Positions 1,553 to 4,500 are shown, numbered from the whole stretch's first letter. The stretch: DNA of 61,622 bases, filler included, from Platydemus manokwari (GCA_037951405.1; 5 parts of 5 records of this genome joined end to end with filler, not necessarily neighbours in it), one strand, 5' to 3'. The notes: generated by a model not told the origin, from the sequence alone. Program-made: numbers and translations.

Positions 1553-4500
1553 ATGTCTGCTACTCACCAAATGCGAACAATGCTAGATGAACTAATGGGA
1601 ACTGCTAGAGATGGTTAGCTTCATATATTTCGATTGTTTTGTAATTCTTTCAATGGAATATTGTAAAAGTGAATATTATCATTTAAATATAAGGATCATA
1701 CGATTTCTTTATGTTTAAGGTGGATACTGTTGAAAATTTAAATAATCTCGATTTTCGCCAAATTTTGTGACTTTTTCAATGTCTGTGAGTATTGAGATTT
1801 ATAACAAAAATCAATCATATAGAATATTTATTTAAATTTTTTTATAAAATAGGTTACAGATACTTTAATTTGCACTTTATCAAAATTCAGGTGGTCGACC
1901 AAGAATTGAATTTGATGACTATCGTGTGTGTAAATGCTATCTTTTAGATTGCTGCCCTCATGACATTTTGGCTGGAACGGTTGGTTAGAATGTGTTGACT
2001 AATTTTATATCAGCTATGAATATTATGAATTGAAAATTATAGAGGATGGATTTGGGTGACTGTGATAATATCCATGATCCAGCACTAAAGGCAGATTATA
2101 ATAATTCCCCAAGAAGAAAGGATTATAATTTCGAAAAAGAAGTGAGTTGAGTGCATTTATAAATAACGGAATGTTTATATTTGTAAATTCAATTTAACTT
2201 AATAATTAAATTCAAAACAATTAAAATTATTTTAAATATTGTGGAAATTAATGGTGAACTTTAGTAATTGATTAATTCAAAAATTTTTAACACCAAACTT
2301 CATCACTAAACTATTCCTAAATGTCGCAATAATTTCAAAAAATTGTCAGCTTAGTACTTGTTAGGTAGGTAGATTTTTTTCCCCATATGTAATGAATTAT
2401 ATTTATATTTTTATATCTTCAAAGTTGGACTGCTATGTATTCGCATTGTCAGTGTTTATTCGAGATTAGAAAGAATTAATTCGATATATTTATATGTAAT
2501 TATAATGGTGTCAAATTTGACTCGAATCAGATTGCAATACACATGTTAATGATGTAATGATTTGTACGATTATCAGTTTTCTGTGAGTATTTTTTTATTT
2601 GGTCAATTTTTTAATGCAACTGAATGAAAAGTTTCTTGTTATGTTTACATAATGCCATTATTTTCTAATTTTTGTCACATTTGTTTTCGATGTTAGATGT
2701 TTTAATCGCTTATGTTTTTTGATTTAATGTATTTCTTCGGATTAATGATGAATCAATAAATGAAATAATTGGGGTGGCGCTATTATATTTTACATTTATA
2801 CTGAACAATGAATAAACAGATCAGTGATTGTTTTGTTCACAGACTGTGGATATTTATTGTAATCTTGGATCAGTGAAATGATGTAATATTATGAACTATA
2901 ATTTCAGTTTTGTTATCCAAAACAAGTCGGTCAAGATCTACTCCATAAATTGCTCCTTGTTTCCCATTTAAATAGGCTTAAACACCCATTCTGATTTTAG
3001 ATTCATTTTTAAAACAAATTTCGACGAAATATGGTATGATACTAAATAAGTATAATTGAGAATTGTGATGTGTTCACGAAAATGTGTTTTACGCTCATTG
3101 GGTATTATAGGAGAAATTTTTATTATCAGTGTTAATATTCAATAGTTTTCCGAGGAATTTCAGCGTCATCTTATGAAATTTAATCATATTGTAGTTGTAC
3201 TTAGCTAATTTCCGAATTTAAAAATTAATTAATTTATTAGTAGTTATCTCAAGATAAGGTGATACTACCTACATTTCGAATCATGGAAAGGTAATTTTCA
3301 TGAATATCAGTATTAAGTAAATTGATTTTCTGTAACCGAATGCTTATAATTTAGATCTAGATAGAATTTTAATCTTGACAAAATGTTTAATAAATCAATT
3401 ATTTTTTAATTATAACTAATTTTAAATATAAATACGTATTATTTAAATTATTTCACATAACGTAACCCATTAATTGTATTTTTAGACTTTGTATTAAAAT
3501 TTGGCTTTCAAAACATTTCATAAAATATAGGTATTTTGTGTGCTTAGATGGATAAAATTTTTATTTTATCATCTATTTTTTGTTAACTTTTAGTCTATTG
3601 CATAAGAGAATTATATAAAAAATGAAAACATTGTCCACATATATGATAATATCCATGAATTAATCTTTGCAATTAATTCATCTAGAATTAGCACATGACT
3701 ATATTTGAACAATTAATATCGATCATTTATTAACTTGCGGAAGTTTTGAAATTAATAAATCAATTGATTTGAAGATTTCTCAATATCAAATTATAAAAAC
3801 TATAGTTATTAAAGAGCCTATTTTAACTACATTTAAGGTAAGTAATTGAATGATCGTCCTTACATTTAATGAATTATGCTTTTGGCCTATGTCATTTAGT
3901 GCTTAGTGCAAAAGCAACTTTCCATGGTAAAAAAAGTTCTAATTTTTGCATACCTAGTAAATTAAGTCTTGCTATATAACTGTTTCCAAAATATTACTCG
4001 TAATGAGAAATGCGCATCATTGTCAATAACTTTGAAAAGTTTAAATTTCTCTTCACTTTACGATGTAATTTCATTGCTTTTTTAATGTATGGAATGCATT
4101 TCGTCTTAACAATATGGTATGGACCCTGCACAATTCTCGCTAATATAAATACCTTACACTCAAATTTTCAAATATCAATATAGTCAAGTGTTTATTCTTT
4201 AATGAGTTATTTAATTTTTGAATCGAAATTCGCTGTTTAAATAATAAACTCATGTAATACTTTAGTCCTGTATCACTTCTTATCTAATTATAAGCTAATT
4301 CTTAATTACTCCCATTGCCTTGTTTTGACACTGTAATAAATGACGGAGACAAAGTTAGAAATTGAATTTGTTTAATTCTGCTCTTTGACTTTTTAAAATT
4401 ACTTTGGTTATTAAGCAAAAGTTAAAGGTAAAATCAACCAGAATATGCAGTTCAATAACTATCTGTCAAAATATCCTTCATTTTAAAAGTATGTTGAATT

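Follow-up and report, generated by a model that had tools for sequence, protein, structure and literature searches.

The closest described counterparts of the element analysed here lie in the vertebrate LUC7 genes, in which LUC7L2 and LUC7L promote the inclusion of a LUC7L exon that carries a premature termination codon (PTC) (Kenny et al. 2025, PMC11842720), and LUC7L2 carries a homologous alternative second exon, AE2 (PMC11842720). The two exons have one common donor sequence with a Balance of +3, the 5' splice site (5'SS) Balance being used here as defined in that work, and switching the donor to a left-handed one abolishes the regulation by LUC7L/LUC7L2; a right-handed donor is necessary for auto- and cross-regulation and is insufficient even in human cells (PMC11842720). 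LUC7L and LUC7L2 favour U at -1, and LUC7L3 acts opposite to them (PMC11842720). The nonsense-mediated decay (NMD) event of LUC7L is conserved into non-mammalian vertebrates (Mudge et al., PMC3176834). The present analysis concerns a 65-nt segment in intron 1 of a LUC7L-type gene in the window, that is, the whole 61,622-nucleotide stretch analysed (filler included) from Platydemus manokwari (GCA_037951405.1), here an AT-rich contig, ~25% GC, of a very fragmented 911-Mb assembly. A sequence-only reading had proposed the segment as an autoregulatory poison exon, starting from the early PTC exon through which vertebrate LUC7L/LUC7L2 are auto- and cross-regulated and from the liking of LUC7L-type proteins for intron-side-strong donors; the first premise agrees with PMC11842720 and PMC3176834, and the second with the Balance +3 donor of PMC11842720.

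Here, with modest confidence, the segment is read as probably a silent pseudo-exon. The features on which this turns are:

1553..1613, + strand: exon 1 of the LUC7L-type gene, the first coding exon, encoding MSATHQMRTMLDELMGTARD plus the first base of a Gly codon (from translation)
1614..1890, + strand: intron 1, 277 nt, phase 1, with donor G/GTTAGCTT and acceptor aaaattcag/G (a slash marks the splice border)
1701..1719, + strand: candidate acceptor, a pyrimidine-rich tract with an AAG end, pyrimidine fraction 0.71
1720..1784, + strand: candidate cassette (poison) exon, 65 nt, between exon 1 and exon 2, GC 0.292
1731..1733, + strand: TGA in frame on inclusion (from translation)
1782..1793, + strand: 12-mer TCTGTGAGTATT, first copy, with the candidate donor inside (GT at 1785-1786), positions +1 to +8 pairing with canonical U1
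1891..1979, + strand: exon 2, first zinc finger region, Pfam PF03194 match
2580..2591, + strand: 12-mer TCTGTGAGTATT, second identical copy, in intron 3 (GT at 2583-2584), with flanks unrelated to those of the first

The architecture that had been described is present. The 65-nt segment, with its pyrimidine-rich AG acceptor and the donor TCT/GTGAGT (TCT/GTGAGTATT), was confirmed at 1720-1784, where the flanks read ..cgatttctttatgtttaag/ ahead and /gtgagtattgag behind, and the proposed junctions 1613>1720 and 1784>1891 are placed correctly, exon 1 ending at 1613 (..GATG/gttagc). Joining 1613 to 1720 gives GGT GGA TAC TGT TGA, so that inclusion leads, as translation confirms, to G-G-Y-C-stop with the TGA at 1731-1733; the segment holds no in-frame ATG for an AE2-like alternative N-terminus. 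The donor is indeed weak on the exon side and strong on the intron side, with a Balance of +3 and U at -1, the Balance of the 12 real donors scored in the window running from -3 to +2. The GTGG start that the candidate was said to share with exon 2 is real but trivial, as the match stops there.

In the favoured reading, an AG...GT pair of the background kind in AT-rich flatworm introns would have fallen by chance in intron 1 of a LUC7L-type gene. Between G/GTTAGC at 1614 and the AG at 1890 the intron would be removed whole, the internal GTGAGT would bind U1 transiently at most, and any inclusion would be low-level splicing noise cleared by NMD, with no regulatory role. We infer this lack of exon use from several results, beginning with the fact that GTRAGT is not avoided: in the sense introns of the window it occurs outside real donors 5 times in 8510 nt, with 3.5 expected from composition, and at this background rate a perfect hexamer alone defines no exon here. 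Over all LUC7 introns (3837 nt), 0.46 GTRAGT donors of Balance +3 are expected by chance and 2 are seen, and the chance of such a pattern in any LUC7 intron is about 0.3-0.4. The stop codon is uninformative because most pieces of a 23% GC intron contain one (an in-frame stop is found in ~86% of random 65-nt intron pieces, and 2/3 shift the frame), and the common GTGG adds nothing. Scores from a splice-site matrix, built from the window's 13 real donors and 12 real acceptors and weak since these sites are weak, are average for the candidate donor (3.9 bits, with 22% of intronic GTs scoring equally) and below the median for its acceptor (1.6 bits, with 35% of intronic AGs scoring equally); the real donors are varied as well as weak, with T at +3 in 5 of 13. 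With a GC of 0.292, the candidate falls below the whole range of the 14 real exons, 0.324-0.426, and exceeds the flanking intron halves (0.226 and 0.189). No YTRAY branch motif was found 10-50 nt upstream of the candidate acceptor, a motif present in 9 of the 12 real introns and for 48% of intronic AGs. The predicted RNA fold of 1600-1900 is no better than that of shuffles (z +0.31), and no Rfam family matched in the window. To these are added the arthropod orthologues without the intron, described below.

Other origins for the segment were also considered. An intronic RNA gene or structured element is not supported, given the missing Rfam match in the window and the shuffle-level fold, and a repeat or mobile-element origin of intron 1 is rejected by its single copy in the 911-Mb assembly. 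The common GTGG and two equal 106-nt flanks had prompted the idea of a tandem duplication of exon 2 with its upstream intron; no similarity beyond shuffles was seen, 52 of 500 shuffles scoring as well as the 171-nt units 1614-1784 and 1785-1955.

Several observations weigh against a silent pseudo-exon. The pyrimidine fraction of its acceptor (-19..-3) is 0.71, reached by only 28 of 270 intronic AGs, and its pyrimidine tract is as good as that of the best real acceptor in the window. In intron 1 taken by itself, the site of the vertebrate PTC exon, the probability of a GTRAGT in 277 nt is 0.115 from intron composition, and multiplied by 0.29 (no exon-side consensus) and 0.5-0.8 (usable acceptor) it falls to ~0.02-0.03, a chance of about 2-3% for the pattern. 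Pairing with canonical U1 over the full +1 to +8 is seen for just 2 of the window's 366 intronic GTs, and these are the twin copies of TCTGTGAGTATT. This 12-mer occurs 207 times genome-wide in 2 x 911 Mb, a frequency of 1.1e-7 per base per strand, at which the expectation for a second copy within the 3837 nt of LUC7 introns is 4e-4; the recurrence was noticed post hoc. Moreover, 3 of the 12 matching positions lie outside anything that a U1/LUC7 model constrains; for these two reasons the recurrence counts as moderate, not strong, evidence for function. Finally, this genome holds both LUC7 subfamilies and a canonical U1, so the parts for a LUC7-sensing circuit exist.

The identity of the host gene, which runs on the + strand from exon 1 at 1553-1613 through exon 6 starting at 6142, was established as LUC7, in agreement with the sequence-only reading, by PF03194 on four exons and a LUC7L-like second zinc finger. 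In all searches the exons were submitted separately; exons 2, 3, 4 and 5 match PF03194 at profile positions 26-50, 51-84, 87-191 and 192-242, respectively, and other LUC7L proteins share 80-90% identity at their N-termini with the product of exon 1. The second zinc finger, encoded in exon 5 (VCSAYLGIQDNDRRLADHFGGKLHLGF), is 1 residue off arthropod and vertebrate LUC7L (alignment A1), and the best named matches of the host protein are 'Luc7-like 1/2' proteins, all at ~50% identity in exon 4. Judged from these two features of its encoded protein, the host gene is of the LUC7L/LUC7L2 type. The remaining exons are:

2043..2141, + strand: exon 3, from translation, Pfam PF03194 match
5164..5481, + strand: exon 4, Pfam PF03194, 90% identical to the soil-metagenome sequence P0001 with equal exon borders
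5912..6096, + strand: exon 5, second zinc finger, Pfam PF03194
from 6142 (..6195), + strand: exon 6, encoding an Arg/Ser-rich tail, with a provisional gene 3' end

Beyond exon 6 the frame soon ends, by either read-through or a splice to about 6632. Just 5' of the LUC7 ATG stand two strong donors, GCT/GTAAGT at 1344 and CAA/GTAAGT at 1372 (1344-1377), and another, AAA/GTGAGTAG at 9201 (9198-9265), stands just 5' of the ATG of a TRP-like gene downstream. Their placing ahead of both start codons suggests introns in the 5' untranslated regions, in which case the 'intron 1' of the LUC7 gene would rank second in its transcript. A donor of full consensus, AAG/GTAAGTAA, is also present at 3835-3845, well inside LUC7 intron 3. 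As the coding sequence has no gap from exon 3 to exon 4, this site would be either a further pseudo-donor or the 3' border of an alternative exon that is not annotated.

A LUC7L3-type gene is encoded elsewhere in the genome, on an AT-rich contig (C1175901, 651-1538, - strand), so that both LUC7 subfamilies are represented. It is intronless and complete, with 295 residues and a PF03194 match of E 5e-60, and its best named match is Luc7-like protein 3 of Schmidtea mediterranea (56%), followed by the Luc7-like 3 proteins of cestodes, monogeneans and trematodes. The closeness of this gene first to Schmidtea mediterranea and then to these other flatworms supports the placement of the organism among flatworms, which had been suspected from the window. 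No annotated species is close to this one; its nearest matches are in a forest-soil metagenome (JGI 3300031718), at 90% identity for exon 4 and 69% for LUC7L3, and a relative in the SRA run SRR33002330 has a LUC7L3 at 72% identity. A canonical U1 5' end, ATACTTACCTG, was found on an AT-rich contig of this genome.

The only other LUC7L-type pieces in the assembly are on C942918 (L003) and C1285920 (L009), contigs of 388-542 nt with higher GC and different intron positions; the latter holds just 138 nt of its own intron 1, where GTRAGT was not found. Together with the short contigs C306126, C1690037, C1484919 and C728479 (L014-L017), likewise of higher GC (34-50%), they carry another LUC7L-type gene and canonical U1 genes. 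These contigs probably derive from another organism in the assembly, be it prey, host or contaminant.

The strongest rival to a silent pseudo-exon, a doubtful one on the sequence but a serious contender, is the autoregulatory poison exon as first proposed. Here, abundant LUC7L-type protein would help the U1 small nuclear ribonucleoprotein (snRNP) to hold UCU/GUGAGUAUU at 1785, the 65-nt exon would be spliced in between two 106-nt introns, the TGA would stop translation after 24 residues, and NMD would close a negative feedback. Its position, between coding exons 1 and 2, is that of the vertebrate LUC7L PTC exon and of LUC7L2 AE2, and its donor, with Balance +3 and U at -1, has the shape promoted by LUC7L/LUC7L2. 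The second zinc finger of the host is almost unchanged with respect to other LUC7L proteins, a LUC7L3-type partner gene is available, the pyrimidine tract is strong, the pattern is only 2-3% likely by chance in intron 1, and the stop precedes the next junction by 51 nt, with four further junctions after that one. Against this stand the acceptor without an upstream branch-site motif, the GC under that of all real exons, and similar strong pseudo-donors in the TRP-like gene, for example the TCT/GTAAGT at 14492; in addition, even in human cells a right-handed donor does not suffice to bring about LUC7L regulation, and two arthropod orthologues lack the intron, so that deep conservation is not general.

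These orthologues are the LUC7L genes of Drosophila mojavensis and of the mite Brevipalpus, which have no intron at the intron 1 position, so protostomes do not generally carry an intron-1 exon. The LUC7L of the salmon louse, a crustacean, does have an intron at the same position and phase, which indicates that intron 1 is old; the louse intron spans 4 kb and contains two right-handed GTRAGT sites, about the chance number. In the LUC7L models of Branchiostoma and Polyplax the normal N-terminus is missing; in Polyplax serrata (GCA_037055365.1; P0186), the first ~50 residues are swapped for 15 unrelated ones before RMDLGEC, either through an annotation error or through an alternative N-terminal exon that recalls LUC7L2 AE2. 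Neither a close full-length orthologue nor any protein derived from transcripts was obtained in the exon 4 word search, the full representative search or the separate-exon profile search, and exon 4 scans of the genome and viral contig collections gave no relative. The contig of the soil relative (P0001/L012, JGI 3300031718) spans exon 4 only, with equal borders and with introns that do not align with the window. A search for exon 2 of this relative, made with two degenerate DNA patterns on metagenome contigs, matched only Ga0065711_1049606, which encodes a vertebrate-type LUC7L exon 2 and may be of human or other vertebrate origin.

The estimate for a used exon was reached from a modest starting prior that the LUC7L-type gene of an invertebrate would contain a right-handed PTC exon within its intron 1, raised by the 2-3% chance of the pattern and lowered by the other patterns that could have been reported, the missing branch motif and the low GC, with the twin 12-mer restoring some weight. 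That the right-handed sites are functional in some way has about one chance in three, and the exact cassette-exon model somewhat less. On the sequence, therefore, the central inference of the sequence-only reading, namely a used exon that triggers NMD and senses LUC7, would be somewhat more likely wrong than right.

The two 12-mers can be accommodated in this model in a combined form, in which the LUC7L-type gene of a free-living flatworm would gauge its own product by means of two right-handed U1 sites, identical and extreme (UCU/GUGAGUAUU), one in intron 3 and one in intron 1, the latter defining the 65-nt PTC exon; this form is considered unlikely. Still less probable is that the twin 12-mers serve as U1/LUC7 docking sites without any exon inclusion, as pseudo-5' splice sites that would hold the U1 snRNP. 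The outcome could then be a slowed or blocked removal of the intron (retention, with read-through past 1613 reaching a TAG after two codons) or, alternatively, the shielding of an AT-rich pre-mRNA from premature cleavage and polyadenylation. There are two exact copies with unrelated flanks, both pairing with U1 at +1 to +8, and the intron 3 copy has no good acceptor at the matching distance; documented cases exist, moreover, of conserved pseudo-5' splice sites with a U1-mediated regulatory effect on splicing (PMC13100119). The strand distribution of GTRAGT points in the same direction, at 10:1 for the transcribed strand and 5:0 among non-donor intronic sites. However, the recurrence was spotted post hoc, the three matching positions outside the U1 pairing are a coincidence under any model, intron 1 offers no canonical AATAAA to suppress, and in the documented Drosophila case LUC7 proteins are not involved (PMC13100119). 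Genome-wide, TCTGTGAGTATT is not enriched (207 copies against 152 for its reversed control), and the 9-mer TCTGTRAGT is rarer than its control.

The strand counts behind these ratios come from positions 1-16931, where 10 GTRAGT are on the + strand, which is that of both genes, and 1 on the - strand, with ~6-7 expected on each; mapped coding donors account for only 2 of the 10, and the non-donor intronic ones number 5 in sense and 0 in antisense. The TCT context recurs in an intron of the TRP-like gene, in the TCT/GTAAGT at 14489-14497 (donor at 14492), also of Balance +3. In total, TCTGTRAGT occurs 3 times on the + strand of the window with 0.16 expected from the genome-wide count, an excess that is not clearly significant after allowing for the 64 possible preceding triplets.

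Very improbable is the use of the GT at 1785 as the alternative donor of a long exon 1 (1553-1784) that would leave the acceptor at 1719 unused and stop at the TAG at 1616-1618: the fit to canonical U1 is far better for this GT than for the real donor at 1614, and a premature stop results here too, but the real donor G/GTTAGCTT matches a variant U1 5' end, AAACTAACCTG, at 8 of 9 positions and need not be weak.

Variant U1 copies of this sort are found alongside the canonical ATACTTACCTG. The canonical U1 and the copies above the Rfam cut-off with an altered 5' end are spread over contigs C202228 (L019), C1892054 (L026), C1197210 (L018 and L022), C1177733 (L024), C1828990 (L025) and C249573 (L033). 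Two copies have the 5' end AAACTAACCTG, which would pair with GUUAGUUU donors, and four have AAACTTACTTG, one of these lying head-to-head with a canonical copy that shares its AT-rich contig. The real donors with T at +3 include G/GTTAGCTT and G/GTTGGTTA, those of both first LUC7 introns. The variant U1s and the frequent +3 T donors may be linked; since the assembly seems to be multi-organism, a flatworm origin of every U1 copy is not certain.

In the surroundings of the LUC7 gene, the TRP-like gene mentioned above extends over 9315-15460 (+ strand). Of its coding exons, which number at least 8, two match Pfam Ank (ankyrin repeats) and those farther downstream are TRP-channel-like; the gene runs into an N gap at 15859. 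At the other end, an open frame of 213 codons at 1-639 (- strand) runs off the contig end; it contains an aspartic-protease-like LLDTGA motif and a weak match to a reverse transcriptase start (RVT_1, E 0.004, below the cut-off), and is probably a retroelement fragment. A 51-nt direct repeat with 73% identity (747-797 and 6683-6733) flanks the LUC7 gene, its similarity seeming, by eye, to run on for ~100 nt, and may be a dispersed short element.

Use of the exon would make it the first case of LUC7 autoregulation by an exon beyond the vertebrates, in a new phylum, and the preference of LUC7L-type proteins for right-handed donors, those of their own pre-mRNA included, would extend to protostomes. 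Should the two-site, self-measuring form be true, LUC7 feedback would be as old as bilaterians or would have arisen twice at the same intron, and in a genome with U1 variants for +3U donors the sites dependent on canonical U1 and LUC7 would make up a separate regulatory channel. Planarian-type flatworms are amenable to RNA interference of luc7 and of NMD factors, which makes the circuit directly testable. If the exon is unused, it is an ordinary pseudo-exon, of a kind for which a stop codon and a good hexamer are cheap in a 23% GC intron.

Compared with the vertebrate LUC7L PTC exon and LUC7L2 AE2 (PMC11842720; Daniels et al. 2021, as cited therein), the candidate is alike in its host subfamily, its place between coding exons 1 and 2, its short and frame-ending nature, and its donor of Balance +3 without exon-side consensus, and the genome likewise has a LUC7L3-type gene as a possible antagonist. 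It differs in being known from its sequence alone, in a host intron of only 277 nt and in the lack of a branch-site motif, and a second identical donor-like site in intron 3 is not described for the vertebrate LUC7 genes. Any homology with the vertebrate exon would probably escape detection at the sequence level; with host subfamily, position, stop and right-handed donor all as predicted for a LUC7L PTC exon, the candidate would not yet count as one of that kind. In the regulated unproductive splicing and translation (RUST) of splicing factors such as SR proteins, PTBP1/2, RBM39, SF1 and SON (PMC3176834; references as given in PMC11842720), a factor promotes its own PTC isoform, as proposed here, whereas the RUST exons were recognised by transcripts and strong conservation. 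The UCP-5'SS of ENOX1/Enox (PMC13100119), which bind U1 and are never spliced, offer the likeness of a strong intronic U1-complementary site near a regulated splicing choice; they are defined by ultraconservation and are LUC7-independent in Drosophila, unlike the candidate, known from one genome. With ordinary pseudo-exons the candidate has in common hexamers at the background rate, a GC below that of real exons, the absence of a branch motif and a cheap in-frame stop, and it departs from them, to the detriment of the favoured reading, in occupying the intron of the vertebrate PTC exon and in having an exact 12-nt twin 800 nt downstream.

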